From positions 2,530,603 to 2,594,602 of the forward strand of contig NW_003314262.1 of assembly GCF_000143415.4 (NCBI RefSeq): 64,000 nt of DNA, given 5' to 3'. A program made the position numbers and the translations under genes. Source of the stretch: Selaginella moellendorffii (taxonomy: Eukaryota; Plantae; Lycopodiophyta). Positions 1-56,425 of this stretch are shown piece after piece; within the stretch, counting starts at the first letter, position 1; the number at the start of each line of letters is the position of its first letter. Under the pieces are notes generated by a model. The model saw only the letters and a list, made by a program, of their open reading frames with translations, made no database searches and had not been told where the DNA came from.

Positions 1-3000
1 GCACCTTTTATTTGAAAAGTTATCTCTCTTTAACATAGAGCTGCTAAGTAAGACAATGGTGCTATTACTATTGGTGACGGCGGTGGAGGAGGCAATGGTG
101 ATGGAGTAATATTAAGGGGAGTGATGGTGTAGCATTTGCTTTTGCTTCATTGCTAACAATATTTTGGTGGAATTCTTGCCATAGACAAGGATGGGCATAT
201 AGTGTTGAGGGGGTTAAATTATTTTTCACTCTTACAACTGCTCTAGACAAATCTCAAGTATGAAATGTGGCTTGGATTTTGGTTGAAACTCCTCTCTTCT
301 TGTTCTAAGTGGCAAGGCTTTTTTAGATTCAAGGAATTTATTGCTACAATGCAAGTAAAGAATTTGAGTTTCATGTTATTGTTGGTGTTGTTGTGCTGTT
401 TTAAAATTTCCCTCATTATTAAGTTTATATTGACTGGATAGAAATTTAAACAATTATTTTTATTAGTGATATGTAAGAAAAATAGTATTAAATATTTATT
501 ACAAACGAATCAAAAAAAAGTATGATAGTGGAATATCCTTAAATATAATTGAATGTTTTAGATATATTCCTTATACACTATACCTCCTACAAGTTTTCGA
601 AAGCAAACCAAAACTAAAAGTAGTTGAAGCTTTCTGAAAAGAAAATTAGATATTAAAATTACAAAAATATAAAAATTAATTAAGTTCTAGACTACTTTTA
701 TATTGAAATTAGTTATATGAGTGCATGGAATATGATAGCCTAAAAACCCTAGTTTATATACAAGATCAAGTGCTCTAAATTGAAATCAATTTAATGGCTA
801 CCAAAATCCCACTATATCAATATTAGTATACAACATTGTAATTATACTCTTGGACTTTATATTATCCCCTCCTTTCGGAATGATGGAAGATAGTCAAAGT
901 TCTCTCATGAACAAGCCAAGATTTGGAGGAACATCAAAAGGTGGCATTAGTGGATTTGTAAGTGGTGTTAGTTGTTCTTGATCCTTTTGTACAAAACATT
1001 TCAATTATTGCATATCCACAATTTCTAGAGGATTGGCTTGTTAAACATCATGCTAAACCTCATAAACTTGTTGCTACAACATTTCATATGGTCCCTTCCA
1101 CTGAGCAAAGAACCCTTAGATAAACCATGTACCATAAGATTGGGAAAATAGATTAATACCAAGTCATCCACTTTGTACTCTACAAATAAATGATGATGAG
1201 AGTTGTAGTGCCATTGTTGTCCCACTTGTACACGGCCCAGATAATCAGTAGACTTTGCTCAAATAAGTGGAAGAATGCTCGTCAAACTATTGATCCCAAG
1301 ACCTAACATCAGCAATTCATAGCAATTGCGAAGGTAAACTCAACTTTATTAGTAGTATTGAATCATGACTATATAGGAGTTTATATAGTAAAGCACTAAT
1401 AGAACTCTCCACCCCTGTAACATATGGATACTAAAATGATGGCAAATAACCATCTCAATCTGAATGTTGAAAGTTCATAAACTTCATAGTCATCCTTTTG
1501 AAAATCCAAACGAACTGTTCTACCAAACCATCTGACTATGAATGATAAGCATTCATGAAAATGTGGCATATGCCCAATTGAGATGTTAAAATGTAAAATG
1601 CCTTAGCCATAAATGCGGGACTGTTATCTGAAAGAATTCACTCCAGACATAAATGCTAGAACAATACTCAATTGAGGAAGAAGTATTCAGTAGTAGTTGC
1701 AAATACACTAGTGAGAGCATCAACTTCCACTCAGCGAGTCAAGTAGTCATAAGCAATAATGATATATTCATTACCAACATTCAACCGTGGAAAACACCCT
1801 ATCAAATCAAACACAACCAACTTAAATAAATGGGAAACTGTAATTGACTTTAACCATCTTTTTGTAGCACAAGGGGGAGTATTACAAGTTATGCACCAAA
1901 GGCAACTATGTATATATTGGATAATATTATATCATATCTTTGGCTAATAGAAACATACACAGCTTCTCGATCACACAACAATGTCCCATATGCTCACCTA
2001 AAATAAAATAATCATGGTAGGCAAGAAGAAAGTGTGTAATAAAGATCAAAAGCACCACCAACTGTAAATGATCATCAAGATCCGTCCCTATAAAATAAAG
2101 AAGACCATCTTCAAGGCGATATTGAGAATGTAAATACTGAAATGGCAAGTCATTAGTAAATGATACAAGATTCTTAAATCCATTGCGAAGCTTTCGAATC
2201 TATAACTCAATCTTTTGAACCTTGCAAACCTCATTAAGAGAAGGTAAATCTTGTTTTGCATTTTGTGGACACTGAATGTCAAGTACAGCAATTGCAGATG
2301 GCATAAAATCCTAGTCTAAAAAATCCAAAAATGCAAGAACAACAGACTCATCAAAGACATAAGAAGAAAGTGAAGAAAAAAGAGGAGCTTAAGAAAGGGC
2401 ATCAACATCAGTTATAAAACTCCCTAAACAATGAACAACATCAAAATTATATATTTGAAGTTTCAAAACCCACCGAATAGTATGATCAATTAAGTTCTTT
2501 CGCTTCAATAACAAAGTAACTGCAACATAATCATTTTGTAATAATGTCTGAGAACTATATAGATATGCATGAAGTTTCTCAAAACCCCAGCCAAATGCTA
2601 AACACTGCTTCTCTGTTATAGAATAGTTCACCTCCGTTGGTTGTAATGTATAGCTGATATATGTAATGAGATAGTGTTGACCAAGCACACTCGAGCTCTA
2701 TTGCATCAACACACCTTCAAGATTAATATAAAAAACATCCACATGCAAAATGAAAAGTCAAGTGTAGTTAGGATATACCAAAACTGGTGGAGTCATCAAT
2801 ATCTATTTGAGATCTATAAATACTTGCTCACAATTTACAAACTAAATGAAAGATGATATTGACAATTTTAACAATGCTTGCAATGGTACAGTGCAATAAA
2901 AAAGATGATTAACAAAATGACCGAGATATTGCACCTTGCCTAGAAAGTGCTACATATCATTCACACACTTCCGAATAGAGAACTTTAAAAGAGCCACAAG

Positions 3001-4141
3001 TTTATCATGATTAACTTGCAAACTCTCATGAAAAATATGGTACCTAAGATAAATTGTATCCTTGGACCCAAATATGTACTTCAACCACTTTAGCTTTAAA
3101 TCATCTTCTTGTAGCTAATCCAACATTTTATAAACATCACAAACATGTTCCTCCCATGTCCCCTCCAATTGGATTAAAACATCATTGATGAAGTCACCAG
3201 TCACCTCTAACAAATCACAAAGGACCTCATCCATCATTTATTGGGAAGTTGTTGGAGCATTATTCAAACCAAACGGCATCACTAAAAACTTATATAAACT
3301 AAACAGTGTACAAAAAACAATTTTAGAAATGTCTTCTTCAGCCATTGGTATTTGCCAATACCCAAAAACAAAATTTAACTTGGTGAACTAATGACTTCTC
3401 CTCAGATGATCCAAGAGATCAGTAGTGTGAAGAAAAGGGTATATATTCGAGATTGTTACTTTATTTAATGGATGATAACTTATGCAAAAATGAATACTCT
3501 CATCAAGTTTAGTCACAACATGAGGTTCATATGCTCAAAAAGTCAATGACTTTCAAATAACACCCTTTTCCAACATCTTCTTGACGTTTGATATAAAATC
3601 TTGATCTCTTTGGGTAACTGATAACAAAGAAAAACTTTGATTGGACAAGCATCCACAGTTAGAATACAATGACATGTTGCAATCTTGGCCCCAGATGATA
3701 AGTCAAATTCAAAAGATCGGCATATTCTTTCATGAGCTAATCAACCGCTGCAACACAAAGACTATCAAATGGATCAGAAAAGGGAAAAAAGGAACAAGAT
3801 AGAAACATAAGAAGAACTAATAGGGAGACAAAAGTGATGGAAGTAGAGATAAAAGCAGAAGGATGAAGAAGTATAAAATTGAAAGGAATGGAAGAAATAT
3901 AAAGAAGTATAAGATAAGGGGGAGAAACCTTAAAGTCACACTTCACATAATTGCAATACAATTAATTCATACTAAAGATGAGGTCAAAATTCTCACTTGG
4001 CACCACCCAAAATGAGTATAATGTAAACTCCTGAATTTGGACTTCCCGGGAGGTTACCCAGCCCAGTACTATTCAAACCCAAGAACATTTAACCTTAAGT
4101 ATCCTAAGACCCTTAACCAATTGAAAAAAAGGGTGCATTCT

Positions 4142-5267
4142 TGTCGCGAATGTGACTTTGGGTATCGAAAGTTACTTGTCAGCCAGTCCTTATGGACACT
4201 CTTTCCTTACTCCCACGACGGCAGAAGGCATTTATCAGTCCCTCTTGTTTAAGTGTTAGTAAACTGGGTTTAGCATCTTTACTTGGCCGGATGAGAATAA
4301 GGAAGGAATTCCTAAGTGTCTAGTTAGCTGAGCATACTCGGCCTGGCTTATTAGTTCTCTTTTGCTTTATCTTGCACTGGCTTGATAAGAACCCTCGTGT
4401 ATTGAGACTAATCCCTTAATATCGCTACATGATAGCTTACCGTGTTTGCCAAACACCTTCGCTATCATGCCCTTTGTATTGGTCTCGTTCTGGTCCCAAA
4501 TGCTATTTATGGAAAGTGTTCAGATTTGCTCGTTTGGCATATTTACGGAATGTAGAGATTGTCCTGAACACAATGGTGTTCGTCCCATGTCCAAATTCGC
4601 AATCTAGGGACATTCCATATTTAGTAAGTTTCGAGCTTGTCCTAGAGATTAACTTCTAATACTAAGGGAGGCTTGGGGTGAAAGGCCAAAGTGTGTGTTC
4701 CTAGGGGGGGGGGGGGGGGGGGGGGATTTTGGGGGTTCCAAATGTATAATAGGGATAGTGGGTAGGTTGGGCATAGCCGACCAACTTGAAGCATAGTCTA
4801 GTTCCCGCTTGCGTGCCTGTCCTTGTTCTGCGTCCGATTTAGGTCTAAGACCAAGTTCTATTCCATGTTAGCTGGTGGAGTACCCATGTCCTTGCATTAA
4901 GCCACCGGTATGCTGAAATAGCACCAGACTCTATTTGGCTCCATTTTGCGTGCTGATCTTAGCATTGGGATGCTGGTTACTCTAAGATTGTTCCAAGTCA
5001 CTCCATGCCCCTGTCCCTTCACTCCTTGGGCTATGTGCTCGAGAGTTGCTCCATGGTCCAGTTCCATCACTCCTTGGCTCCATGTGTGGAAGTTTGGCAC
5101 CATTCCTTCGTTCAATGGCCCAAGGCTCTAAACCTCGGGTTCCACACCACTGTCCTATGGACACATGGCATGTGACACCTGGCACATAAAGGGTTTAGGT
5201 TCCGCTTTATGGTGTTATCCTATGGTAAATCACCATAGGATAAAGGGTAAAAACCACATGCGCTACA
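4142..5267. mobile_element. Solo LTR, family A (1126 bp)
   Basis: Termini TGTCGCG...CGCTACA (imperfect inverted repeat); TSD ATTCT/ACTCT (4137-4141, 5268-5272); Cassandra LTR sequence resumes exactly after it; contains a G22 run at 4704-4725. Confidence 0.8.
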
Positions 5268-5418
5268 ACTCTTACTCATGGGCCCTTTCCCTTTATATTT
5301 GAACCCTATAGACCGTCTCTCGAGTCGCTCTCTTTAGTTTGCTTCCCTGCAATTTCACGCCCTCGTGAACGGAAGCTAAGAGCTGCAGCTCTCCTGAGAG
5401 CTCCGCTCTCTTGACACC

Positions 5419-7344
5419 TGTAAGCGACTAAATTTTCCATTCTACTTTAGTCACTTAACCACACCTCCGACCACTTGGAGGAGTCTCATTCACAACCTCC
5501 ATCAGTCCAATTCAGGACTTGGGACTTGCTAGCCCCAAGAATGGCATCCATGCCACTCAACACTTGCACCTGGTCCAAGTGCTCCACGTGTCCGGTCCCA
5601 AAACCGACACCCAAAGGTACCACTGACATCTCGGCCCGTTACGCTAAGGCCATGCCCATTCACCTTTGCTGCACTAGTGGTCCAATACCACTTGCATCAC
5701 CATCCCGTCTCTCCAAGACTGGGCCATCTGTCCACGAGTGGTCATCCTAGATCCACTCCTTAGCATCCTTAGGATGCCCACAGACCTGGGGAATCGCCTT
5801 CCCCAAAATCCCTTTGTCAGTTCCTACCAAGTCCCTTTCTGCCCCTGGCCGTGTTTGCCAACACTGTCACTGGATCGAGGCCCACAGGCCCGACCACTAA
5901 GTCCCATGGTCCTCTAGGACTTCCTCACCACACGACTGTGTCCTTGGTCACTACCCCAGAGGACTGCTCCTCTTCCTTTCCACAGTCTAGGCCATTGGGA
6001 CAACATTTCGGAACACCGTGGCCTTACGCGAGCCACCTGGGTACTCTCCTCGCCTTTCGCCTTTAGGTGCTCTAGCCATGGGCTTAGAGCGAGGTTCCGT
6101 TGAGCCACGCCTGGTATCCAAGTAGGTAATGCCACCCACACTTGGACTGGGAGCATCGGCCAGTCGATCTCCCGGGGGAACTAGAGCCGGCTCTTGAACA
6201 CTTCACCAAGCTACCCCGCTTGTCGGTCCATATTCACTCTAGTCTTGGACTTCCCAGTGGTCAGTTCATCACCCAACACTGGGTCTGGCCTTCCTGGGCC
6301 AAACTAGCCTTTCCTGGCCAAACTAGCTCCACTGCAATCCTCCCCCTTACTATACTTTTGGAGCTCACCAAACCCCCCAGGGTCTGGGAGACGAACGCTT
6401 TGGGCTTTCACCCTCTCAGACTCGAACTCGGACTCAGACTCGGACTCGGGCTTGGGCTCGGGCTCGGGCTCGGTCTCAGCCTTGGCCTCGGTCTCGGTCT
6501 CGGTCCCGGTCTTGGTCCCGGTCTCGGTCTCGGTCCCGGTCTCGGTCTCGACCTCGGACTCCATCTCGGGTCCTTCTCGGACTCCATCTTGGACTCCATC
6601 TCGGACTCCATCTCGGTCCATCTCGGACTCCATCTCGGACTCCATCTCAGACTCCGTCTCGGTCCATCTCGGACTCCATCTCGGGTCCATCTCGGACTCC
6701 GTCTCGGTCCACCTCGGACTCCATCTCAGGTCCATCTCGGACTCCATCTCAGGTCCATCTCGGACTCCATCTCGGACTCCGTCTCGGTCCACCTCGGACT
6801 CCATCTCGGACTCCATCTCGGGTCCATCTCAGACTCCATCTCAGGTCCATCTCGGACTCCATCTCGGGTCCATCTCGGACTCCGTCGCGGTCCACCTCGG
6901 ACTCCATCTCGGACTCCATCTCGGGTCCATCTCGGACTCCATCTCGGGTCCATCTCGGACTCCGTCTTTGTCCACCTCGGACTCCACTTCAGGTCCATCT
7001 CGGGCTCCATATCGGACTCCATCTCGGACTCCACTTCGGACTCTATATCGGACTCCACTTCGGGTCCATCTCGGACTCCAACTAGGGTCCGTCTCGGATT
7101 CCATCTTGGACACTTCCACGTGTCATGTGTTGGTCCTTTTTGGGTCCCTTTTTGGAGCCTTACTTATTGCTCGCTTTGTGCTCGCTCCTTGAGCACTTTG
7201 TTGGGAGTTCCACTCCCGCTCTCGACCTTTCAAGTCGGAGCTTTTAGTCCAAACATGTTACGCTCGTTTGGCTTTCACCTCGGCCACTACCACTTGGCAC
7301 CCTTTCCAGCTCCACTTTGGGGCCTAGGGATTTTGTGTCTCACA
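5419..7344. mobile_element. Solo LTR, family B copy 1 (1926 bp)
   Basis: Termini TGTAAGCGAC...GTGTCTCACA; TSD ACACC/ACACT; colinear with 7583-8864; inserted in the Cassandra internal domain. Confidence 0.85.
6416..7100. repeat. Expanded CTCGG(A/G/T)/CTCCAT minisatellite inside the family B LTR
   Basis: Tandem 6/11/12-bp units (CTCGGACTCCAT, CTCGGGTCCAT); the same array is only ~140 bp in copy 2 (8610-8752). Confidence 0.95.
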
Positions 7345-7582
7345 ACACTCTACCCCTTGGGTCAAGCCCAGCAGGAGCAAATTGGACCCTTGCCAGATGT
7401 CAATCAACATGTGGTGTGATTCCCCTAGTCAACCAACAGAGTCGGACCTGAGACCCCTCTGATACCAAATGTAAACTCCCGAATTTGGACTTCCTAGGAG
7501 GTCACCTAGCCCAGTACTATTCAAACCCAAAGACATTTAACCCCAAATATCCCAAGACCTTTAACCAATTGAAAAAGGGGGT

Positions 7583-8864
7583 TGTAAGCGACTAAATTTT
7601 CCATTCTGCTTTAGTCACTTAACCACACATTAGACCACTTGGAGGAGTCTCACTCACAACCTCCATAAGTCCTATTCTAGACTTAGGGACATGCTAGCCC
7701 CAAGAATGGCATTCATGCCACTCAACCATTACACTTGATCCAAGTGCTCCATGTGTTTGATCCCATGACGAACACCCCAAGGTACCACTGACATACCAAC
7801 CCGTTAGGCTAAAGCCATGTCCATTTACCTTAGTCACACCGATGGTCCAACACCACCTGCATCGCAGTCCCATCTCTTAAAGACTGAGCCATCCATTCGT
7901 GAATGACCATCCTAGGTCCACTCTTTAGCATTCTTAGGATGCCCGCAGACATGGGGAACAGTTTTCCCCAATATCCCTTTTATAGTCCCCACCAAGTCCC
8001 TTTTCTGTCCATGGCCGTGTTCGCCAACACTGCCACTGGGACAAGGCCCACAAGCCCAACCACTAAGTCCCACTGTCCTCTGGGACTTCCTTACCAACAT
8101 GACTGTATCATTGGTCACTACACTAGAGGACCACTCCTCTTCCTTTCCATAGTCTGGGACTTTGGGACAATATTTCGGAACACTATGGCCTTATGCGAGC
8201 CTCATGGGTACTCTCCCCACCTTCTGCCTTTTGGTGCTCTAGCCGTGGGCTTAGAGGGAGGTTCTATTGAGCCACACCAGGTATCCAAATAGGTAGTGCC
8301 ACCCACACTTGGACTAGGAGCATTGGTCATTCGATCTCCTAGGGGAACTAGAGTTGGCTCTTGAACACTTCACCAAACTACCCTGCTTGTCAGTCCGTAT
8401 TCACTCTATCCTGACTTCCCAGTGGTTATCCTATCACCCAACACTTGGGTACAACCTTCTTGGGCCAAACTGGCCTTTCCTGGCCAAACTGGCCTTTCCT
8501 GGCCAAACTGGCTCCACTGGAGTCCTCCCTCTACTATACTTTTGGAGCTCACTCAACTCCTTAGGGTCTGGGAGACGAATGCTTTGGGCTTTCACCCTCT
8601 CAGATTTGAACTTGGACTCAGACTCGGACTCAGACTCAGACTCGGGCTTGGGCTCGGTCTTGGCCTCGGCCTCGGGCTCGGTCTTGGTCTCAACTTCGGA
8701 CTCCATCTCGGATTCCATCTCAGGTCCATCTCGGACTCCATCTCGGACTCCTCAAGTCAAAGCTTTTAGTCCAAATGTGTTACGCTCGTTTGGCTTTTGC
8801 TTTGGCCACTACCACGTGGCACCCTTTCGGCTCCACTTTGGGGCTTAGGGATTTGTGTCTCATA
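7583..8864. mobile_element. Solo LTR, family B copy 2 (1282 bp)
   Basis: Termini TGTAAGCGAC...GTGTCTCATA; perfect TSD GGGGT (7578-7582, 8865-8869); inserted in the Cassandra 5' LTR. Confidence 0.88.
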
Positions 8865-10712
8865 GGGGTGCACTCTTATTCATGGGCCCTTTCCCTCTGT
8901 ATTTGAACCCCATGGACCGTCTCTCAAGTAACTCTCTTTGGTTGTTTACATATAAGTCAAACTTAAGATTGCCCACATGCACAACTAGGTTTGCCTCATC
9001 CCGTATACATGTATATATATGGCCATTGCCATAAAAAATAAAAACTGACTCTGCCACACGACAACAAGCCAAACAATAAAAGATAAACTCAAACCTATAT
9101 CAACCAACACAAAAAGAATAATAAGAGACCTCTTGTTATAAGAGCGAGCTTGAAAAGAACTAGTGCCAAGTGAACCCTTTAGTAATACTCTTAAAAGAAA
9201 GATGGAGGGGGTCATTGACTTATTTGCACAAGGTCCCTTCACTATTCATGTGACTCCTCATTTCCCGAAAGCATCTCGATATTTAAACTTTCCACTACAG
9301 TAGCACTAACAAAACATTATTGATGCCAAAGTCTCCACCTAGGAAATGGAGGTTGTCAATCCTAAAAACACCAACAACACCAATAAGTATGACAAACTTC
9401 ATCACATGTTTAGTAATGGACATCATAACCACGACTATGTCCTCACCCTTGTCCTTGAACTTGGGTAGCAGCAACATCAAACTCCATTAAAATAAGACTA
9501 TCTCCCACAAGAAGTAAAGCTGAAAGATATGTAACAAGAAGTGGAAGAGGTGACATTTTACAATGTTGTACCAAGTAAAGAGGATTGTCAAAGGTGGCTA
9601 GAGTAAGTGCATACTCAAGTCTTATAAGATCTTAACGAAGTGTTGGCCACAACATTCCCAACTTGATCTGCTCTAATATATTTAACTCCACACGAAGCAA
9701 AAAGCTATAGAAATGAATGCCAAATTGCATCATGGACTTAGATGGCCATTGACAAAGACGATGCAAATTTTGAAAGGCATTATCGTAATTGTCAATATGT
9801 CTAAATACGCATTTGAAAACGTTTGGGAGAATGCTCCAATGCTCACAATTGGCTACACTCAAACCATTGTACCATTGTAATACCGTTTCTTGCAAACATA
9901 TGGAAAACTCATGCAAATGCCAAATATCATCCCAAAAATGATATATAGCAATCACTATAAAATGATTAAACTAATAGTACACATCATCCCCAAAATTCCT
10001 ACTGAAGAACTTCAGCCAAACAGAAGGATTGGCAGCAAGAGAAAAGGAGTTGTACCATACATTATGAATATTACCATCAACTGAGTTTAATTGTTCAACT
10101 ACAACCATATAGCATTGAGCAATTGCACCAACTATTACTCCAGAGTCAAAAGAGGAGGAGGTTGGTGCTTTGCCATGAAGATGAACAAAAAGGAAAAACA
10201 AAAGAAAATAAGTTGAGAAAAGCTATAAGAAAATGGAGATCTAGACAATACAAAAGCTAGATTTAAACCAAAATCCCAAATTTTAGCACTCCTTAAGGAC
10301 AATCAGAGCTGCCCCTCAACTCCACCAATGTGAATGTATAGAATATATAGAAATGTGTATATCAATTAACCCAAAAACCCTAGTTTATATATAGAAGCAA
10401 GTGATCTATATTAAAACCAATCTGACAACTACCAAAATCCCAATACGCTAATATTAGTATACTTGGACCTCACAATTATATATTTATTAAAAGAAATTTA
10501 GTAAAATTTTAAATCACAAGATGGCTGTAGGACTCTATGAAGCTGATTTGGGGTGCTAAATATATTTTAGAACTGTTAATCCAATGGTCTAAATTCATAT
10601 AAATACTATTACATAGCATTGGTTTTCAAAGAAGTGGAAAGACATTTCAAAATACTTTTATGCTTTAGTCTTTCTCATTTCTCAATGGCATTTGCAATGG
10701 TTGCCACCAATA

Positions 10713-11488
10713 TGTAAGCAACCAAAGGGAACGATTCAAGAGACGGTCCATGGGGTTCAAATATAGAGGGAAGGGGCCTATGAATAAGAGTGCACCTCCT
10801 TTTTCAATCGGTTAAAGGTCTTGGGATATTTGGGGTTAAGCGTCCTTGGGTTTGAATAGTACTGGGCTAGGTGACCTCCCGGGAAGTCCAAACTCAGAAG
10901 CGTTACATTTGGTATCAGAGCGGTCTCGGGTCCGACTCTGTTGGTTGGCTAAGGGAATCGCACCACATATTGATTGACATCTGGCTGGTCCAGTTTGCTC
11001 CCATTGGGCTCGACCCGAGGGGTAGGGTGTCAAAGAGAGCGGGGCTCTCAAGAGAGCTACGGCTCTCAGCTTCCGTTCACAAGGGCGTGAACTTGCAGGG
11101 TAGGGTGTCAAAGAGAGCAGGGCTCTCAAGAGAGCTACGGCTCTCAGCTTCCGTTCACGAGGGTGTGAACTTGCAGGGAAGCGTGGTGGATTGTAAGCAA
11201 CCAAAGGGAACGACTCAAGAGACGGTCCATAGGGTTCAAATATAGAGGGAAAGGGCCTATGAATAAGAGTGCACCCCTTTTTCCAATCAGTTAAGGGTCT
11301 TGGGATATTTGGGGTTAAGCGTCCTTGGGTTTGAATAGTACTGGGCTGGGTGACCTCCTGAGAAGTCTAAACTCAGGAGCGTTACATTTGGTATTGGAGC
11401 GGTCTTGGGTCCGACTCTGTTAGTTGGCTAAGGGAATCGCACCACATATTGATTAACATCTGGGAAGTCCAAATTCAGAAGCGTTACA
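10713..11488 (+). mobile_element. Cassandra-type TRIM, tandem form (LTR-internal-LTR-partial internal-LTR end)
   Basis: 195-bp LTRs at 10713-10907 and 11192-11386 (TGTAAGC...GTTACA); PBS TGGTATCAGAGC at 10910-10921 (tRNA-iMet); 5S-like block at 10835-10889; perfect TSD CAATA (10708-10712, 11489-11493); 79-bp internal tandem duplication at 11020-11177. Confidence 0.93.
10835..10889 (+). promoter_or_regulatory. 5S rRNA-derived Pol III internal control region (A box, IE, C box) in the TRIM LTR
   Basis: GTTAAGCGTCCTTGGGTTTGAATAGTACTGGGCTAGGTGACCTCCCGGGAAGTCC aligns without gaps to nt ~51-105 of plant 5S rRNA as I recall it (about 46/55 vs the angiosperm sequence). It is not a complete 5S gene. 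Confidence 0.9.
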
Positions 11489-13610
11489 CAATATTGTGGG
11501 AGCTCCAATATCACAAGCTTGTCTCTCTAGTGTCAAGCTAAAATTCTTCTAAATTTTGGGGATTTTTTATGGATCAAGGTTTTAGGTAATGAATAAAAAA
11601 TTAAGATATGTGTAAACAACAGCTATTGGGCAAGTAGTAATGCAGGAAAATTTAATCATAATAAATTATGCTTATTCAGCCACTGCCATTATAAATCATA
11701 TCCTCAAAAAAGGTACTAATTTATAAGAAACTATGTTATAATCATATCCTATAATATCTCAAAGTCCTAATTCCTTATTTATTTTCTTTATAGTTTATGG
11801 AAAAAATAATTTACTAATGAAAGATTTTTTAATAAAAATAAATATAGAATCATTATTATTGATATAAAAGTGTTTTATCACATTTTTATTTTTTAATATA
11901 AAAGAATAATTTCATTTTTTTATTTCAGCATTTAGAAGGTTATGTTCATTAGAAATGTCAAATAGTATAACTTATGGAGGTGGGCATTATTTCTGATTTA
12001 AAGAACTTCTTTAAAACATATTTATAAACAATATTGTAAATCTATTGTGAAAGCATGTTCAGAAAACTGCAGATTATTATACTTTTTAATATAATGCTTT
12101 TTTTTACCGAACAAGATGATAATTTACTTGAGAAAAATAAGATTTAAAGATACTATTTTAAGTGGAATATCATATATTTCTGATTTAACATTAACAACTT
12201 TGAATGCTGGATTTAAAAATAATATAATTTATAATAATAAATATTTAATTTCTAAAAATAGAGAGAATAATTTATTAGTAGCATCAAGCTATAAAATTTC
12301 AAGGCTATGTATTTCTGAATAATTTTTATGCATTACTTATTTTTACAAAAGTCATCTTGTATTATATACAAAAAATAAAAATAATAATGTGGTCTACTAA
12401 GTCACTGTCTTTTTGGATAAATCTTTAAACTATATTAACCAGAAATTAGAAAATAACTTTTTTTAACTTTCCAGGACGGAACCCAGAAGGATGAAGCGTC
12501 CAGCTAGACGAATCCAGAGTTGGTCAACTGGTTGATCAACTCCAGGACTGGAGATTATTATGGGCCCTTGGACCTTCAGAGATGATCAGTTCCATCGGGC
12601 CAGCCTCGTAATTACTATAGACCCAGAGGGCGAAGCTAAGCGTGAGGACCTGCAAAGTTTGCCTGCAGCACTGCTCAACGTGATCAAGGATATGATCGGC
12701 TTTGCAGACCCATGCCACCCAATCTCCCGGCGTCCAATGTCTGGTCATCACCCCTGTCGTCCTGCTGTTCAGCTCACGCACGCGCACAATCGACCGGGGC
12801 GTCGCTCACCCAGCCCTCGCGATTCTTACCAGGCTAAATAGAAACTTTTTAGATTCATTTGTGCCCATAGTTTCCTGGTAGCCAGGATACTAGCGGGATG
12901 TAATAAGCAGCGCCGAGCATTTCAGCAGAGTTGGCACCGATCTTGCAGTAGCACGGCGGAATCGCGTCGAAGGCCGCCCTGCCAAGCTCGAACCGCATGG
13001 CGGCGCGAGCAGAGAAGAGGCAATTCTTCGAGGCGATCAAGCTCACGAGTCTAAGGCCGCTCCAGAGTCCAGAGTCCAGACCTGTAATTATGGTCATGCC
13101 GCTGGAGGCGATCTCTTATTTCCAAAGTACGCAGTTTGTTCTATGCGAGCTGGAGGCCACTGAGCATGGTCCACGGCAGTGGATCTCCTGGATTTTGTTC
13201 GACGTGTTGGGGTTGTGATGCTGGCATCTGTGGGCAGGGGGAAGATCCAAGTAACTTAACCAAGTATAGAGTGAGACATGGAGTTTGCATTGTCCAATAC
13301 TTCCATGCAAGGCGATTACGAGCCACAAGGTGGAACTTACTGTCAATCAGCGTTACCTCAACCTCAAGAAGTATTGCAAACCACGTCCCAGGAGATTGGT
13401 GGTGAGTTTCCTCAAGAAGTGTTTAAGCAAGGTGGAGGAGCCACTTGTTGGGGACAAGCCCAAGATGTAGGTGGTGCCAGCGTTTCCTCAGAAGTTTTTG
13501 CCCAAGGTAGAGGAGATATGCAAGCCACTTGGCAGGCCCAAGACTTTGCTGATATCTTTATTGACGTCGAGGTCTTCGCTAAATTCATGGAAGGCCACAA
13601 GAAGTTGCAC

Positions 13611-13855
13611 TTGGATTACAAGTGAATCGGATTACTAAAGTGATTGCAACCAAACTTGATGAAGGAACTCATCTCGTTGCGATCTCCCAAATCGCGAGCG
13701 CGCTCTATATCGTCGATGATTTCTTCTTTGACTTGCCTGCTCTTCATTCCAAGCGGATGGCACGTTCAACAGGTAAGGAACTTAGCCATCTTGTTTCTTA
13801 TGTACTGAACGTCTTGCATGTCATAGCCTGCTTCACTGGCTTCCAGATAGAACTC
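13611..13855 (-). repeat. Inverted partial duplicate of the 3' end of the 13979-15028 ORF
   Basis: Reverse complement of 14762-15033 with small indels; the ORF track shows the same peptide (ASALYIVDDFFFDLPALHSKRMAR) at both places on opposite strands. Confidence 0.92.
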
Positions 13856-13978
13856 ATCAGTCATCGTTTAGAAAAGAACCGAAACGAATATTCGAGTTCC
13901 ACACGAATATTCGAATCTATGCGATGATTCACATCCACTTAAATTCAAACCAACCGCGCTCTTTCGCGCTCTTCTTCC

Positions 13979-15028
13979 ATGGCATCTCGGGTCTCAAGCC
14001 CGCGGCACTCGGTGTCTCCCAAGCGAGGCTTCTCCGTGCTGGGCCAAGTGAGAAGCGTGAGCAGGGATGAGATCCGGCAAGAAGCTCTCCACGACCCATT
14101 CCTCGAGGTGTATCGATCCGAAAAGAGGCCCCTCTCTCCCCGGAGCCTCACGCACTCCCCCTCCAAGGAGCTCACCTTCATCGCCATCAGCAAGTACACG
14201 GCCCCGGATGGCAGCGACGATCTCCGATCGCTGGGTCGGAGCGTCACCACGCTCCAGGAGCGAGTGGAGGTCCAGGCCAAGGAGCTCGAGGCACAGGCGG
14301 CTATCCTGGAACAGCAGAGCCGGGAGATTAAAGAGCTCCAGCCCATGAAGGAATGGTTCCAGAAGCAAAACATGGAGCTCTACTGGTCGAAAGTTGGCTC
14401 ACCGCGAGGAGTGGCAGCGTTTGAGATCCTGGCCGAGGTCCGCTCCATGCTGTCCAGAGTCATGCACAACCACATCTCGTCAGTCATCGAGACTATCCAG
14501 AGCGAGGACAGTGGCGATTCAAGCGAGCAAGCAGTCGTGTGCGAAGAAAATGCTGCTGCAAGCAGCGCGAGGAGGGGGAGCAAACGCGAGCGTCGGGAGC
14601 ATGCTGATGCATACAGGCAGCTGTTTGGGAAAGGGCCATTCCGGAACAAGAAATTCAAGCACGGGACTTACGAGGACTTACTGATGCATGTGGTTGCCAA
14701 GGAATCCGCCAACGAGGCTGTGGATCCAGCCTTGACTGATGCACTCGAGGCGGCGGAGGCGGAGTTCTATCTGGAAGCCAGTGAGGCCGGCTATGACATG
14801 CAAGATGTTCAGTACATAAGAAGCAAGATGGCTAAGTTCCTTACCTGTGAGAGGAAAAAGCGGAATGAAGCGTGCCATCCGCTTGGAATGAAGAGCAGGC
14901 AAGTCAAAGAAGAAATCGTCGACGATATAGAGCGCGCTTGCGATTCTAAAGACCTGGGAGACCTCAACGAGATTAGTTCCTTTATCAAGTTTGGTTGCCT
15001 GCTCTTCAGGCGCCACAATCACTTGTAA
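13979..15028 (+). CDS. Intronless orphan protein (349 aa) with Ser/Pro/Arg-rich N-terminus and coiled coil
   Basis: Long GC-rich ORF with ATG and TAA; heptad segment LQERVEVQAKELEAQAAILEQQSREIKEL; no family recognised. Confidence 0.6.
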   Translation: MASRVSSPRHSVSPKRGFSVLGQVRSVSRDEIRQEALHDPFLEVYRSEKRPLSPRSLTHSPSKELTFIAISKYTAPDGSDDLRSLGRSVTTLQERVEVQAKELEAQAAILEQQSREIKELQPMKEWFQKQNMELYWSKVGSPRGVAAFEILAEVRSMLSRVMHNHISSVIETIQSEDSGDSSEQAVVCEENAAASSARRGSKRERREHADAYRQLFGKGPFRNKKFKHGTYEDLLMHVVAKESANEAVDPALTDALEAAEAEFYLEASEAGYDMQDVQYIRSKMAKFLTCERKKRNEACHPLGMKSRQVKEEIVDDIERACDSKDLGDLNEISSFIKFGCLLFRRHNHL

Positions 15029-15045
15029 TCCAATTTAAAAGTGCC

Positions 15046-17976
15046 TCAATGAAGAGTGGTAGAAGCAGAAGGAAGACGAGGGCGAATTACATTTAGAGCA
15101 CCTCTTGCAGTCGACTGTAGACGTAAAATTTGCACCTCCGTAAGTAAGAGTTTGAAAAGAATAGCCTACCTCAAAGAAAGAGTTGTAGTTTAAACGTAGA
15201 AGAAACTGCCTCAAGAATGGTGCTCGCTGGCTTCCTGCTAGTTTACTACTTCGCAAAATTGTGTAAAGCGAGTTCGACTTCTTGTTGAACTCCTGAACAA
15301 ACAAACACTGTGATTATCGAAACTTCCTAATTTCAAACAAACTTACCTCCGTTATTTGATCCAGCTCAGCAGCTGTAGAACTCGAAGTGGCATCTTGATG
15401 TTCCATGATGCGGCACAACTGCAGGCATAGTTTGATGATGCTATCCAGTATCCTAGACACTGAACCAATATCTAGAAAAGACTGAGATATTAAAGCTGAC
15501 AAGTACCTGCAGAAAGATCAAGCTAAAAACATTTCAGAATCTGCAAAGAACGTTACTCTTGATGAAATCGAGCCAATTCTGTAAAATCTTTTGATGCCTG
15601 AACGCGCTCTTGCAGCAAATTCCATTGAGACTCGATGACATCCACCTGAGCGAATTAAGAACATTTCGATCATGAGTTCTGTTGAATCTCTTACCTGTAT
15701 GTAGAACTGTAGATTTGTTATCAAATAGGCCATATGTTGTCGAAGCCTCCAAGTAGGCATACCCGAAACTTTGGGATCATCCTTCTTGTGGTTTTTCTGA
15801 CGGCCTCGGGATTCCCTTCGATCACGCTGCATGGCTTTTGCCCAAGATTTCTCGAGCTCAAGCTGAATCCGCTTCAAACGAAGTAGATACTGGAACACCT
15901 TGCTGTATCTGCAATAAACCTTGTAAGACCGTGAAAGATGTTATAGGACCTACTTGGCCAAAACTTCTCGATTGAACAGAAGCTGCAGCGGCCAGTCGAT
16001 GCTATATTCCAGCGCAATGCCATCCCACCCATCATAAGAAGGTCCAACCGCAATGTCCGACAGTGCATCGATGCTGGACCTTTGCTTCACCTCCATCTGT
16101 GAAGGAGGGAGTCCAGAGTTTGCTAACAGTGGCATCCTGGACATGGTTAAACACGTTAACAAGCACCAGCATCAATTAAAAGCTTTACCTTAAGGTAACT
16201 CGCGAGAAGTACTTGTCCTCGTCGCCTATTGTCTTTACTGCAGCCTGTGCCGTGATTTTAAACATTATTGATTGCAAAAGATGTTTTCTAATACCTGCTG
16301 AAAAGGTGCTTTGAGATCTGCCTCTGCCGTCGATGGCCTAGGAGGAAGCTTCATCAAAGATCGGCTCTCTTCCAGAAAACACTGACAATCAAACAGTCAG
16401 TACGAAGGCAATACATTAGCTCACGTACCTGGAAAAAATCTCCCTTAGCAAGAAGAAAATAGTCTTTGAAGGCTTTCAAATGGCCAACCAAATCCGCGTG
16501 AACTACCACAAGCTGCAAGAACCAGATAAAAAAGGACAACTTGGATTGAAAAAACTACTCATACCTTCCAAAGATGTGTGGCCGCGATAGTGCGTATAGA
16601 ATCAATAGAACGTTCAAAAGAAAGTTTGTGGAATAGTGGTCTTTCCTAAAAAAGCAAACCATCAAGCAATCGGGAAAACTGGAGTAATGGCAAAAGTACC
16701 TGAAGTTCGCGAAGCAGTGAGCCAATCTTTTCAGCTTCTTCTTTAGGTAGAAGTTCAGGTCCTTCGTACGCTCCACTGAATGAGTACTGTTTCGTCAAAG
16801 ACGACGAAGCACTTGGATTACGAAGAACTCTCACTGCTTTGCCGACAAATAAAATAGACTCCGCTACCGGTAATTGGATGTAATCTGGTAGCATGTCCTA
16901 TACAAATTACAAGATATGTGACAGTCGAACACAAGACGCTATAATGCATACCAGTCGAACACAATATCCGGTGTGCCAGTCGATCATATTGGCATCTTCA
17001 GTGCCACGCCCAGACTTGGATTTATTTGCTGGTGGCTCGGACGCATCTATGTCCGCTTTCGCCTGCTCGTCTTGAGTCCTGCCAGTAAAGAATCAGAACG
17101 TCATTGTGAGTAGCACAAGAATACCTGCTTATAAAAAACTCTTGATTTTGATCCTGTAGAAGGCCATATACCATCCACCCCGAAAGCTGGCGATACATAA
17201 CCTGGTGTGCTTGCCATAGTAATCTGTAAAACGAAACAAAAGTAAAACGAAAACGTCTTCCTCAAAACTATTTCCCTTACCTTTGGATCCAGGTCTGGAG
17301 TTCTGGGATGCCGCAGTGAGACCTTTCATGCAAAAAATTTAAGAGCTTTCCACCCCGTAGCTTCTTTGATTCCACCTCTCGGACCAAAGCATGTAGTGGA
17401 GGCAACAACAAATCAAACTGCTCTAAAGTCAGACGACAAGCAAAAACCAAAGAGACAAGGTTCTTACTTGCTTGAGGCACTGCGTGACGATGGCCAAAAC
17501 CGGCAATGGATCAGCCAGAATATTTTTCTCCAGCGTAAGAACTGCCGATCGATACTTGGCAAGAACCTCGGTCACTCCATTCGCCACTGCTCTCTGGTAG
17601 ACGCTGTGCTGCTGGACGACAGCCTTGGAATCCTGGAGAGCTCCAATCCAGCTAAGATTTCGCGACTTCAACGCGAAGCGATCCAGCTCCCGGTAGTAAA
17701 ACCCCAGCCGTAGCAGCCGCTCGAGAATTTCCCTGGATTTTCAGCGATCAAGGCAAAGAACACAAGATTTCTCCGCACAAACCTCTCAGACGGCCGCAAG
17801 AACTGAAGATCCGGCGCAATCCGGAACGTACATTCATCGCTGCTCGCCCCGTCAGGATCATCCTGTGCGTAGTGCCTGCTACCGTCCTTGAATCCAAGGC
17901 GCCGATCCTCCTCGTCAGCATCGATGAACACATCGCCAGTGCATCCGACCAGCGCTAGCAGGAGCTCGTGAAGCAT
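15046..17976 (-). CDS. GCP4: Gamma-tubulin complex component 4 (multi-exon)
   Basis: N-terminus MLHELLLALVGCTGDVF; exon peptides LRGGKLLNFLHERSHCGIPELQ, AESILFVGKAVRVLRNP, HLKAFKDYFLLAKGDFFQ, YLITNLQFYIQ, FLRQFLLRLNYNSFFE; last exon ends ...ARGALNVIRPRLPSASTTLH-TGA at 15046. Confidence 0.93.
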
Positions 17977-19739
17977 TCTTCAAGCAAGCCAGTCCCAAAA
18001 CCCTAGAGAGTAAAGGCTAATCGAAAATAAAACGATTTTGAGCTTGCCTCGTCAAATACTTTGTCTATAGATGAAGTGACTAAAGCTCGAGAATAGTGCG
18101 ACTAATTTACAGCTCATGGACTTGAATGTGTGCCTATCAATTCAAGGATATCTGGATCGATAGACCTGCTGTTTTTATGATCTGTGTGTCTTGATTTTGG
18201 AATTTCACCTGATGTGGGAGTTGTAGATTGTGTATAATTAGCAGGAAGAAAGCAATGTTGTATATGAACACCAAATGCAAATTCTCAAAGAATAGATTAA
18301 TCTTGTGTTTATAAATTATATACATGTTTATAATATATTGACAGTTAACACTATTTTCTAAAATTAACAATTAATGAGATTTTGATTATTTTATTCAATG
18401 ATAATATCTGGATTGCATTAATAAAAAATATACTACAGTATGATTAAACAAGAATTGAAACAAATAATGGCAAACAAATGAAGTTCTGCTTCAAAGCTCT
18501 ATATTTCATTACTAATTTAATATTATAGTTTACAGTAATTAATTTATATATTGAGAATATATACCTAAAATAAATAAAAATAAAAATAAAACATTTGTTC
18601 AATGCTTCTTTGGCACTGGCACTAAGAGATTGAGATAGAGTAGCATTAGAACAAACCATAGATCTCTATCAAATAATGCAGAAGAACAACTAAAAGCCTA
18701 GTTTGGTCTTGTTCGGCATGATCACAAACTCAAGAGCTAGGGACTACTAGGCAATCTTATGACTCTTCCAAAATGTTGAGATTAAGCCAAATATAATTCT
18801 CTTCAACAATCTTGATTAATAAGCAAAGAAAGTCACACTTGCCATAGATGATAAGCTATGACCTAAAGCCATTAAAGATAACTCTTAACATCCTCATCAA
18901 CATATATACTAATGTTGCTTGACAAAGTCTTAGATGTTTACAACACTATCAAGTGGAAGAAATGGAAGCTTGATATCCTCATTTACAACATGCACTCAAG
19001 TTCTGCGTGGATAACAATAACATTTATAAGGGCAAAAGCTTGATTGAAGATATGGAGAGGGGGAAGCAATTACTAAATTGTATGATTTACAGGATATTAA
19101 GATCTATACAATTAAAGATAACAGTGGCTATTGAAGTAGCCAAAGGGAAAAACCTAAAAATGATTAAAGGTTTTAACATTATAAAAACTGTGTGTTTATT
19201 AATTTAAATTCATCTCCAAATTTCTAAGCATCCTTGTATATAGTTATCCAATTCACAGCATGTCAAGATCAACTAGAAACATGAGGATATTGTAGTGGAT
19301 GTGATAGTAAGCTCTAGCAATATAAAATAATAGTGTATATTAGAATTCTAGACAAGAGAAACCAATGCTAAAATGAATGACTTTTTAAAAAGTCCAAAGT
19401 AAAGAGCTTACACCTAGTATTAAAGAAGGATTAAGTTTGCTAAAAGAATCACATTATATATTAATATTGATATTTAGAAATTTAATTTATTTTACCTGAG
19501 CTAAACTTAAGTGGTAGAATATCAAAAGAGTGGCTTCTTAAGAAAGCCATGGGTAAATTCTATTTACAAAGGCATGAACTTGCAAGAAAGTATAAAGCAA
19601 TAAAGGAAAGAAAGAGATTTATTAAGATTCAATAATAGAGAAAGTGAATAAAGGTCCCAAAAAGTCTAAACTAAAAATCTTACAACCATGTTTGACAAGT
19701 TCAAGAACTAAGCTCATACTCTATAAGTTATGACAATTA

Positions 19740-20767
19740 TTTCTAGCTAAAGATCCAAAATGGAGCTCTGACCTAAAAAGTCAAGAGTGGGAATGGAATT
19801 CCTAAAGAAATATTTAAGGAGTGAATATGAAATAGTAATTTTAAAAAAGAGACAAAAAAAATGATTAACACTTAGAAGTGTCAAAACTGAAGCCTTAAAA
19901 CCTGAGGACTAGAAGTGGGACAATGTTAAAATCATTTTCCCCAACTAAGAAACTAAGATATTTGGAGTTTGATATATCTTTAGGTGAAGTTTAAAGTAAT
20001 CATCTCCCAAACCTTGAGGGGTTTGGTAAATCCTTATGAGATAATTGGGGGAGGACTCTACATAAGCCAATGTGACTAAAAAAGTATTATACTCATGCAG
20101 TAGGTGATGATATAAATATTAAGAAGTCCAAAACTAAAGTGAACCTTTCACCCTTATAGGTGAAAGTAAATTAAATGTATAATTCCCAAAAGCACCAATG
20201 CATAAAACTCATGGATTCAATATATCATTGCAATTGCAATTGCTTGTTCCTAATGGCCTATCCTTCCACTAATAGTTATGTGGTGAGGAAGTCTCAGAGG
20301 TTAACATGACTTAGTAGACAAGTCTTCAAGTTGACTTAAATGGCAAATATTAGCAAATACTATCGTGATTGGAAAAGGATTAAGTGGGATCAAGGAAAAT
20401 ACATTGGAGGATAGTGATTTTCTACATCTTAAGGTATTCTAAAGATGCTAATTAGTGATCATAAGATAGCCACTCATAGAATAGATTGGAGGGATGGGTT
20501 TATAGTAATGAATTACTAATGAGATAGTGAATACAAACATGGCTTTAGTGTAAAACATTGATATATTATTAATACTTTTAGGTGTCTGAAATGGGATTTA
20601 GACACATGGAATATTTGAACTATATGTACAGTTAATGTGGATATAAAGCTAACTTTAAGGTCATACTAATGACTCTAAGTTGGGATGAGGATTTATAGAG
20701 GTTGTGAATGAGACTCTTAAACTATAGATAAGTGATTAAAGTAAAATGGAAAATTTAATCACTTAAA
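19740..20767. mobile_element. Old, CpG-depleted family B LTR copy in the opposite orientation
   Basis: 20731-20767 AGTGATTAAAGTAAAATGGAAAATTTAATCACTTAAA matches the rc of 5419-5455; 19980-20060 matches the rc of 6340-6415; 19750-19890 matches the rc of 7100-7250. The left boundary is uncertain. Confidence 0.7.
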
Positions 20768-22569
20768 TTTACATTGATGTGGCAAATAAATTAATGTGAA
20801 TTACAATATTATGGCAAATAAAGAATTAATATTTAGTATTAATATGTATAATAAACTATATAAATTTGGCTTGCATATCAATATGTGTTTATGCCTTGAT
20901 CACAAAATTGCAATCAACATTATTTTTTGACTTATACATATATGTTTAAATAATTTAAACACATGTTTTATTGCAATATGATTGAATTATGTGCTACATC
21001 AGAACATCTGTGTACCTCTTTTAAATATATAATCATCTTTTGATTATCATAAATTTTTTATAAATATATAAAAAATTATAATCTACTTAAATATTGTCTA
21101 TATTGATACAATATACTTTTCATTTTACCAAATACCTTATATTTTTGCTTATCTTTTCTCATTTACTTGATCATGCCATCTATTATAGTAGTAAGGCCAT
21201 ATAACCAAAATAAATAGATAAAACATTTGGCTCAAATAGTTTTTATAAAACACTTTAATAATTTATATATTATTATCTTTAAAAACTTTATCATGATTAT
21301 AACTATTACCATATTATAAAAAAATTTAATATAAGAAAACTGAATAAAAAATAACTATAATTTTTTTACTGGGTCACATTCAAAATAATTTTACTCTTAA
21401 TTAAATCCTTAAAATTTTTACTTACATACCTACTAGAAGCTTTAGTTTATATTTCATATTATTTATTTTTTCAATAATTTTGAATGGCTAAGATTATTAA
21501 ACTTATCATTTTTAACATATTTAAAATTTAAAACTTATATACAGTAACCCTGGAATTGTAGCTTTGCCCATCCTTGAATCCAAGCCCTGTATTCTTTCAT
21601 TCTAATATTAATTCTCACTATAGCTAGGGTCGTGACCGCACTATTTTCTTTACATGAAACTTTAATTAAAGTTTATAGAACCTTAGCTAAGTAAAAATAT
21701 CCTTTTTTCTGTGTTGCCACATTGGAACACAAATAATTTAGCAACTCCCTAATAATAAAGATCAAAATTCCAATGAAATAAACGAGATTTGTGGATTCTA
21801 ACATGAAAAACTTTTATAGTACAAGTGTAATTTTTCCCAATTTATTCCTTTGGTAGTGGAAATGCTATTAGGATTTTTATGATTTTTTTTTTTCGGTAAG
21901 AAGGATTCTAAAATGGTGACTCATTTGATGAAGATTTGTAGTCATGTATATATTAATTTTTGAATAAATAAATAATTTTACTTTATTTTAATGGATATCA
22001 AGAAATAAATATAGAAATTATATAAGCCTTTTATCTTGATAAGGTTTTCTAAGACTATATAAAAATAAATGATACATAGTTCTCTCAAGTGAAACACCAA
22101 TAACAGTTTTGATTAAGAATGCCAAAATATATATTATTAAATTATTCAGATTATTAAATATTATCACAATTTTAATTTTAAATTCATTATTTTGACTGAA
22201 AGCCTTTTTAGAAAAAAATCAATTTTAAAAAAATACTTTTTAATTTAACTAAATAACTATTTTGTGTAATAAATATCATCCTTAAATTCAAATCTATATA
22301 CATATAAATTGAGGTGCATTACATTAGATGTGATTGTTATTAAGAATTTAGACTTTAGTGTCAAGTTTACTATGATTTTCATCATTACCATATCTATTTA
22401 TATAAGGTTCTATAGTAGGGATAGTTGTCAAAAGCATAGGCAACCACTGAAAACATGTGTTGCTCCTTATTTTATATCCAACTTAGGTTTAAGTTTGTAA
22501 GAAACTAACTCACTAAAATGTTGTAGGCTAGAGGATCCCTTAAAATCACAATTAGAATAGTAAAGGGTT

Positions 22570-22800
22570 CATTGGATAAGACTGAGTTTAAGACTGATTA
22601 TGTCCAAGATTAAGTCCAAGAAGATTAAGTCCAAGATCAAGTTCAAGCCAAGTCCAAAATCTAAGATTAAATCCAAGATCTGAGATTACATTTGAGACTG
22701 AGTCTAATACTAAATTCGAAACCAAAGTACAAGTACTAATATAGGTTATAGGTTAAAAGCTCAGGGATGTGAAAAGTTTCAAAAGTATAATAAGGATAGG
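22570..22800. repeat. Decayed family B-like minisatellite/LTR fragment
   Basis: AAGTCCAAG/AGATTAAG short repeats resemble G-to-A decayed GAGTCCGAG units, followed by AAGTTTCAAAAGTATAATAAGG (cf. rc of 6345-6365). Confidence 0.45.
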
Positions 22801-23058
22801 CCTTAGCATTAAAAACCTTCTCCAATGATGTTTTTAAATCAAGTTAGGATTGAAATTGGGGGTGAATAACATTAGGTGGGAATGAATGTGGGGAGTGTTA
22901 AAGAAGCTCCCAGAAAGGAAACTGACAACAGTGCTCCCAACTTAAGTGGTGTGGTGCCCCACTTTAGTACCATGAAAAACACTCTTTTCCATACACTGAA
23001 CTTCAAAAATTCTTCTAGGGTGACATTGGCAATGGCTGGGATGTCCTTGCCTCACTAG

Positions 23059-23430
23059 GGACGTTTTCAGTGCCAAGAGATGCGGCTGTGCAACCAGCTC
23101 GAAAATCATGATGATGCAAATTGAGAAAGAGGATGAGGGCCATAACATTGTGGAAGCAGGCTTCGCGGGTGTATGGAATTGGAGCACAGGTAATGGATCA
23201 AACACTTGAGAACTTTGCAACTAATTGAACTTTCGTTTTACAAATTCTAAGGGACGTGGGTGTTAGAATGATGAAGCTCATGACAAACAATCCAGCAAAG
23301 TATATGGCATTGAAAGGCCATGGTTTGGTGATCACTCATTTCAGTGATCTCCACTATCACTGACGAGAACAAGCGCTACTTGGAAACCAAGCGCGAGAAA
23401 ATGGGCCATGTCTATGGCTCGGACTTATTT
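23059..23430 (+). pseudogene. RIBA (GTP cyclohydrolase II) C-terminal fragment
   Basis: Translates to DVFSAKRCGC..., [31 protein letters not shown]...[21 protein letters not shown] with frameshifts and deletions; no N-terminal part. Confidence 0.8.
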
Positions 23431-23579
23431 CTCATTGCTGACAAGGTAAATGGGGAGAAAAAGAGCCAAAATTCTCTTTAATAATACGTCGAGTGTTCGA
23501 ATCTCGGTAATCATCAAATTCTTTCCAAATTTGCAAGCTGGAAATTTCCGAACATGAAAAACTTTCCCATTGAGAGAGC

Positions 23580-56141: not shown

Positions 56142-56199
56142 GTCTCAAAATTGTCATGGAGTGGCATGGCTTTGCAAGAGTGGACAAGAATGTAGAGGA

Positions 56200-56271
56200 C
56201 GCCGTTGCCGGGGATCGAACCCGGGTCGTCCGCGTGACAGGCGGAAATACTCACCACTATACTACAACGAC
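56200..56271 (-). tRNA. tRNA-Asp(GTC)
   Basis: Exact reverse complement of 27750-27821. Confidence 0.97.
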
Positions 56272-56355
56272 ATTGACATTGATCAGGCTTTTGTTTATTT
56301 GATTTCCCCGCGCCATAGCATATACTAAGTATAATCTACCCTACGGATTTAACCT

Positions 56356-56403
56356 ATTCCACATGCCATAGTGTGGGATGAAGCCACCAAAGTAGTATAT
56401 AAA
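56356..56403 (+). promoter_or_regulatory. snRNA promoter: USE-like element and TATA box
   Basis: ATTCCACATGC (cf. RTCCCACATCG) at about -70 and TATATAAA at -30 relative to U1. Confidence 0.65.
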
Positions 56404-56425
56404 GTAGGGTTTGACGAGGATTAAC

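Follow-up and report, generated by a model that had tools for sequence, protein, structure and literature searches.

The 64,000-nt stretch of the Selaginella moellendorffii genome considered here (contig NW_003314262.1, positions 2,530,603 to 2,594,602 of the forward strand; hereafter the window) holds near its left end a small retrotransposon into which other retrotransposons with long terminal repeats (LTRs) integrated three times. The recipient is a Cassandra-type terminal-repeat retrotransposon in miniature (TRIM), designated Cass1, which lies on the minus strand at 4022-8950, is bounded by the target-site duplication (TSD) TATAA at 4017-4021 and 8951-8955, and carries three nested solo LTRs, termed A, B1 and B2. 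Two further Cassandra copies, Cass2 and Cass3, follow to its right. Taken as a whole, the locus is a well-documented nested insertion with a suggestive hot zone for integration, the latter drawn from a small sample.

Cass1 sits in a decayed minus-strand element of the Ty3/gypsy type. An RT_RNaseH domain at 2392-2697 marks this host (E=2e-16), which also has a weak match to gag at 9635-9970. An exhaustive protein search with its RNase H piece recovered relatives at 49% identity or less, and the host sequence flanking Cass1 has a GC content of 0.34-0.36 and an observed/expected CpG ratio of 0.26-0.29; the surroundings, from position 1 to ~24 kb of the window, are a graveyard of transposable elements (TEs) with GC contents of 0.26-0.37. 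A second view of the host family comes from the locus of SELMODRAFT_411913 (GL377581.1; hereafter L002), which represents the other haplotype of window positions 12287-24542. The host family has a copy there, 78% identical, that is unbroken at the equivalent of the Cass1 site (L002 7297-7309), and because this related copy runs uninterrupted through the site, Cass1 is confirmed as an insertion. The two haplotypes differ in structure, the L002 copy of the host family lying at a site equal to window positions 12287-12292 and the window copy, with Cass1 inside it, at 736-10462.

The primer-binding site (PBS) of Cass1, of the tRNA-iMet type, lies at 7457-7467 (plus-strand letters CTCTGATACCA, sense TGGTATCAGAG), and its place next to the LTR starting at 7470 identifies the right-hand LTR of the plus strand as the 5' one. 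Read in the sense direction, the minus-strand element thus begins with the first 86 nt of the 5' LTR (8865-8950), which contain a TATA-like box, and resumes beyond B2 with the 5S-like part of that LTR (7470-7582) and the PBS side of the internal domain (7345-7469). Beyond B1 follow the side of the internal domain that bears the polypurine tract (PPT), delimited at 5348-5418 by repeat search and alignment to Cass2, and the first part of the 3' LTR (5268-5347), with a loss of ~15 nt at the border between the PPT and the LTR; beyond A comes the 5S-like part of the 3' LTR (4022-4141, sense positions ~75-194), with a run of A7 (T7 in the sense strand) at 4124-4130. Both 5S-like parts match the Rfam 5S_rRNA model, at 4025-4112 in the 3' LTR (27.2 bits, E=0.017) and at 7473-7560 in the 5' LTR (25.1 bits, E=0.061), in each case below the gathering score of 38.

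Each of the three inserts has TG..CA termini, a 5-bp TSD and no internal domain, as expected of a solo LTR, and all three lie on the plus strand, antisense to Cass1. LTR A (4142-5267; 1126 bp, TGTCGCG...GCTACA) is flanked by ATTCT at 4137-4141 and ACTCT at 5268-5272, B1 (5419-7344; 1926 bp) by ACACC at 5414-5418 and ACACT at 7345-7349, and B2 (7583-8864; 1282 bp) by GGGGT on both sides (7578-7582 and 8865-8869). B1 and B2 belong to one family, B, with 82% identity over their shared length, and A bears no resemblance to either. Family B is represented by three copies, the third of which (B3) is described below; A, present once in the window and L002 together, stands for a putative family. B1 is longer than B2 because a tandem array of the 12-mer TCTCGGACTCCA has expanded, with ~50 copies in B1 (6540-7111) versus ~5 in B2 (8696-8751), and this accounts for most of the length gap. 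The interior of A contains an unbroken run of ~23 G at 4704-4726, and an open reading frame (ORF) inside B2 has no homologue by protein search. The 5' terminus of the family-B LTRs, TGTAAGCGACTAAA (5419-5432 and 7583-7596), is identical at 12 of 14 bases to that of the Cassandra LTR, TGTAAGCAACCAAA (10713-10726), a likeness that may indicate a common integrase or helper; two metagenome scans, one with the B terminus and one with the Cassandra box C region, returned no match.

When A, B1 and B2 are cut out, each with one copy of its TSD, what remains is a 582-nt element with LTRs of ~195 nt that is colinear end to end with the uninterrupted Cass2 (87% identity over 579 nt) and aligns to it without gaps at the sites of A and B2. 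The initial annotation had described three TSD-flanked solo LTRs of two families inside a Cassandra copy of ~580 bp, and the excision confirms this arrangement; the insert boundaries that it gave hold for A and B2, and its end of B1 was one base off. The restored element is a Cassandra TRIM by its size (<1 kb), its short LTRs, its 5-bp TSD, its PBS and the purine tract that precedes its 3' LTR. Since each insert has its own TSD and excision restores a colinear Cassandra, the locus is no chimera: A, B1 and B2 are three independent LTR-retrotransposon integrations, each later collapsed to a solo LTR. A single element composed of B1, the segment 7345-7582 and B2 was likewise ruled out, its outer flanks forming no TSD and each of the two LTRs having one of its own.

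The reference copy, Cass2 (10713-11488, plus strand), consists of an LTR, an internal domain, a second LTR, a partial internal domain and a third LTR reduced to its last 26 nt, a tandem three-LTR form that was inserted as one unit, as its TSD CAATA indicates. Its internal domain contains a 78-nt tandem duplication (11020-11175). The 5S matches in Cass2, and in the four LTRs of Cass1 and Cass2 taken together (RF00001; E=7e-5 to 0.06), score 23-33 bits, all below the Rfam gathering score of 38. The half of the 5S-like sequence with box C is near-identical to the 5S consensus, the 5' half is not recognizably 5S, and the Rfam alignment of the 5S-like RNA needs an internal deletion of 32-36 nt.

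In sense LTR coordinates, in which position 1 is the first base of TGTAA..., the shared layout comprises a TATA-like box (AAATATA) at 47-53, a GTGCAC palindrome at 78-83, a T5-7 run at 88-92 (for example at 4124-4130, 7572-7576 and 10800-10804), the box A motif GTTAA at 123-127 and a box C region at ~145-165. The four undecayed LTRs, those of Cass1 and Cass2, conserve both AAATATA and the box C region, and in the decayed LTRs of Cass3 the two can still be recognized. GTGCACCCC, which adjoins the T run, resembles together with it a 5S 3' end plus terminator. The TSD of A falls at 75-79 and that of B2 at 82-86, and the earlier claim that two different families hit sites 7 bp apart in equivalent sequence therefore stands. 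Counting 50 nt back from box A places a predicted transcription start (+1) at position 73, a matter of arithmetic and not an observed start, with the TATA-like box at -26 to -20; plant 5S genes are reportedly equipped with a TATA-like element near -28, according to work on Arabidopsis by Cloix and colleagues. Because the two promoter cues, box A spacing and TATA-like box, agree, a start at about 73-80 is predicted. Relative to the extrapolated +1, the TSD of A covers +3 to +7, the TSD of B2 +10 to +14, and the junction of B3, which is uncertain, about +5 to +9.

B3 abuts Cass3, a strongly decayed plus-strand Cassandra copy at 19363-19645 that retains the last 52 nt of its 5' LTR, a PBS (TAGTATTAAAG, 19415-19425), the internal domain, a PPT and a 3' LTR from ~19591. 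B3 itself, on the minus strand (~19646-20767), is a decayed full-length family-B LTR and the sole further one in the window; in a scan of the TE-rich leftmost 26 kb that tolerated transitions it scored 491, against 176 or less for shuffled sequences. Its orientation is antisense to Cass3, the relation that B1 and B2 have to Cass1. L002 shows this arrangement too, in a better state of preservation: the 5' end of B3 is clear there (TGTAAG..) and the 5' LTR of Cass3 is complete and unhit. The 3' LTR of Cass3 reads there to ...CATAAATAAGGGTTC (canonical ...TATGAATAAGAGTGC) and then ends. Its homology to Cassandra breaks off in both haplotypes, at a boundary that a change-point analysis set to positions 78-81 in L002, the window allele giving no clear optimum. 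To judge from these alignments, a much older LTR of family B probably interrupted a third Cassandra copy at this same LTR position. Searches within ±5 kb turned up neither a sister LTR for B3 nor the other half of the 3' LTR of Cass3. A weak B-like signal at 22547-23323 stems mostly from a CTCGGA-type repeat and was not counted. In L002, the internal domain of the Cass3 allele contains a GC-richer insert of 326 bp (16102-16427) that the window allele lacks and that has no further copy in the window or L002.

Seven Cassandra LTR copies are visible in all (two in Cass1, two and a stub in Cass2, two in Cass3), and three of them have an LTR junction at positions 75-86, that of Cass3 being the uncertain one. 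All four detectable LTRs of families A and B in the 64-kb window touch Cassandra, which makes up ~2.6% of it, and B3 is the only data point among them that was unselected. The initial annotation had seen no further insertions in the ~4.8 kb of gypsy host, and indeed BLAST and a transition-tolerant scan found no A or B copy in the host flanks of Cass1. In a simulation that assumes uniform insertion and ignores the post-hoc choice of the locus, three of four insertions over ~2.1 kb of Cassandra fell within a 7-bp span with P≈0.005, and one further hit came within ±7 bp of the first two with P≈0.07. These sequence comparisons point to what is probably an integration hot zone of ~12 bp in the Cassandra LTR, at sense positions 75-86. 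The observed/expected CpG ratio is 0.00-0.04 in B3 and Cass3 versus 0.37-0.72 in A, B1 and B2, and given this CpG depletion and the GC content, B3 and Cass3 are far older; the zone would therefore have been used at widely separated times. Its use by two unrelated families, at times far apart, speaks for a feature of the target and not of any one integrase.

The likeliest mechanism, to which we give somewhat less than an even chance, is start-site-directed integration at a Cassandra hot zone. The zone would sit at the LTR's own predicted start, ~25-30 bp beyond the TATA-like box and with the 5S box A a further 50 bp along, and a promoter complex there, or a nucleosome-free patch kept open by such a complex, may attract or admit the integrase. 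In yeast, Ty3 integrates 1-4 bp from the start sites used by RNA polymerase III (Pol III), through TFIIIB (PMC5006619). A specific version of start-site direction, in which the mobile 5S promoter would assemble TFIIIB or Pol III and these would tether integrases in Ty3-like fashion, seems doubtful, and Pol III tethering at the Cassandra LTR is best described as plausible but unproven. Slightly more doubtful again is the system that the initial annotation had proposed, in which families A and B find their targets via Pol III initiation factors on Cassandra 5S-type promoters and one parasite provides a 'portable landing pad' for others: the independence of the insertions, their clustering, B3 as a probable third case and the start that both promoter cues place at the zone speak for it, and the position of B1, the tRNA genes of the window and the T5-7 run, taken up next, speak against it.

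Several observations weigh against integration directed by a start site, and against a Pol III start site in particular. B1 is an insertion into the internal domain, and the nearest predicted start is ~150 bp away from it (B1 at about -150). The three tRNA genes in the window (two for tRNA-Asp, one for tRNA-Pro) have no LTR within ~400 bp, a weak negative with n=3. The conserved T5-7 run, which lies 10-15 nt past the predicted +1 and ahead of box A, would terminate a Pol III transcript started at 73-80 once it was 10-20 nt long; it has no bearing on whether factors bind the LTR. The start positions given earlier, 4143 and 7591 in uninterrupted coordinates, agree with the TATA-like cue but come from an ungapped extrapolation from box A, and the global Infernal/Rfam alignment begins the 5S-like RNA 30 nt downstream, at LTR position ~103 (4112 and 7560). 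The geometry fits equally well a Pol II-type U3/R start, or a nucleosome-free LTR promoter of either polymerase. As for the zone itself, there are four junctions, of which the first three were chosen post hoc, and Cassandra LTRs that were not hit include the two of Cass2 with its partial one and the 5' LTR of Cass3 in L002. In B3, finally, the last ~100 nt are too far decayed, or rearranged, for an alignment with B1 or B2 that would fix its end, and the far flank is not Cassandra; no TSD can be verified for it, and the break could therefore be a deletion endpoint or the result of recombination between two elements.

The rival that survives best, although we think it unlikely, is that the hits piled up by chance. 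DNA that is methylated and rich in TEs often accumulates nested insertions, and the window's left 24 kb are TE-rich; in a genome where Cassandra copies number in the thousands and LTR insertions in the tens of thousands, three hits on a few copies, at near-coincident positions, would be expected, and the scan would have picked out one such locus. By a rough estimate, one or two Cassandra copies per genome could gain three hits under uniform insertion, and chance would also accommodate the unclean junction of B3 and the untouched state of Cass2, 1.8 kb from Cass1. It sits poorly with the concentration of all four A- and B-family LTRs of the 64 kb on 2.6% of the window, with three of the four junctions falling within 7-12 bp in LTR coordinates (P≈0.005), with the 4.8 kb of host DNA around Cass1 that took no hit, and with B3, which came unselected as the sole other copy of family B.

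LTR integrases show a weak preference for palindromic, bent or nucleosomal targets, and a local preference for the sequence or shape of the zone could operate with no part played by the transcription machinery, an account we consider more unlikely still than chance. The GTGCAC palindrome at 78-83 is flanked by the TSDs of A and B2, which are symmetric about TGCA, and the rigid T5-7 tract could position a nucleosome edge; palindrome and T run are conserved in the four undecayed LTRs and weakened in the decayed Cass3 LTR. An in silico survey reported a bias of plant LTR retrotransposons towards palindromes and positioned nucleosomes, and nesting of a region-specific kind (PMC6911290), yet in the same survey LTRs were not commonly targeted. 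A local preference also has to contend with a zone common to two unrelated families, with three TSDs and flanks that share no motif, and with single-strand folding, which revealed neither an unusual fold nor a tendency to form a hairpin or cruciform at positions 75-86.

Quite improbable is kin-directed nesting, or 'autoinsertion', in which family B would use an integrase identical or related to that of Cassandra and prefer its older relatives. We know of no mechanism for kin recognition. The 12 of 14 terminal bases common to the B and Cassandra LTRs would suit it, as would the autoinsertion preference of plant families (PMC6911290); family A has different termini and nevertheless used the same zone, and the sites chosen by Cassandra itself (TATAA and CAATA, in AT-rich gypsy DNA) lie outside Cassandra. 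The least probable by far is that there were no insertions at all and that recombination or template switching joined Cassandra to a larger non-coding LTR element in a chimera, given that every insert has its own 5-bp TSD, that the flanks outside B1 and B2 do not pair as the TSD of one element, that the inserts are antisense to Cassandra and that their removal restores Cassandra exactly.

If integration is directed by the start site, the closest known parallel is Ty3 of Saccharomyces cerevisiae, which shares with the present case 5-bp TSDs and landing within a few bases of a Pol III start (here a predicted one) and counts 5S genes among its own targets. Ty3 sites lie 1-4 bp upstream of +1 (PMC5006619), whereas the Selaginella TSDs lie at the extrapolated +3 to +14; unlike the targets of Ty3, moreover, the Selaginella target is a mobile 5S promoter inside a retrotransposon, two families use it, and the tRNA genes in view are unhit. 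LTR integration directed to Pol III genes has evolved independently in DGLT-A and Skipper-2 of Dictyostelium, in Ty1 and in a Schizosaccharomyces japonicus element found upstream of Pol III genes (PMC5006619, PMC4600332), and the window-type targeting of Ty1 could also accommodate B1 at about -150. These cases differ in that they concern compact fungal or amoebal genomes and are backed by family-wide statistics, and none involves a land plant or a TE-borne promoter. The survey of nesting among plant LTR elements (Jedlicka et al. 2019, PMC6911290) resembles the present case in its non-random positions inside LTR elements and in its palindrome and nucleosome correlates; it differs in that the 3'UTR was favoured and LTRs were rarely hit, and it contains no hot zone at base level and no TRIM or Cassandra case. 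Known Cassandra TRIMs share short LTRs with 5S boxes A and C, a PBS of the tRNA-iMet type and tandem multi-LTR forms (PMC10853983, PMC7215508); in the literature searched they are described from ferns and flowering plants, and a role as target goes unmentioned (PMC10853983, PMC7215508). A fixed insertion place in 5S-type sequence is also known from Mutsu and other non-LTR retrotransposons specific for 5S or small RNA genes (PMC5340908). Such elements rely on sequence recognition by an endonuclease and on target-primed reverse transcription, and are not integrase-mediated LTR elements.

Start-site-directed integration in yeasts and social amoebae has been read as an adaptation to compact genomes. 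In the literature searched, Pol III-directed LTR integration is confined to yeasts and dictyostelids (PMC5006619, PMC4600332, PMC6673722), and a 2025 review of host factors in plants names only routes through chromodomains and heterochromatin, CENH3 and H2A.Z (PMC12786077). If the tethering to Pol III factors were true, the locus would represent a Pol III-directed integration system that is the first of its kind in a land plant, and a lycophyte hot zone at a mobile Pol III-type promoter would amount to a fourth plant route. A TRIM could then create safe harbours for other elements, and LTR positions 75-86 would provide a sequence handle for asking whether Cassandra promoters are occupied in vivo. 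If chance was at work, the locus is an ordinary nested TE pile.

Elsewhere in the window, an ORF at 13979-15025 is 99% identical to SELMODRAFT_411913 of S. moellendorffii, and between L002 and the window identity is 97% in genes and 82-92% in the TE-rich part; L002 1-3742 has no match in the window. An exact look-up of four plus-strand window ORFs in a protein collection found none of them present. At 56197-56860, a tRNA-Asp gene (minus strand) and a full-length U1 small nuclear RNA gene (plus strand, 114 bits) stand head to head, 150 bp apart, and after them comes a tandem duplication of 109 bp whose copies match perfectly (56643-56860); the tRNA-Asp gene has an identical copy at 27749. Further to the right, an ORF at 61797-63632 with telomerase RNA-binding and reverse transcriptase domains is probably an exon of the TERT gene.

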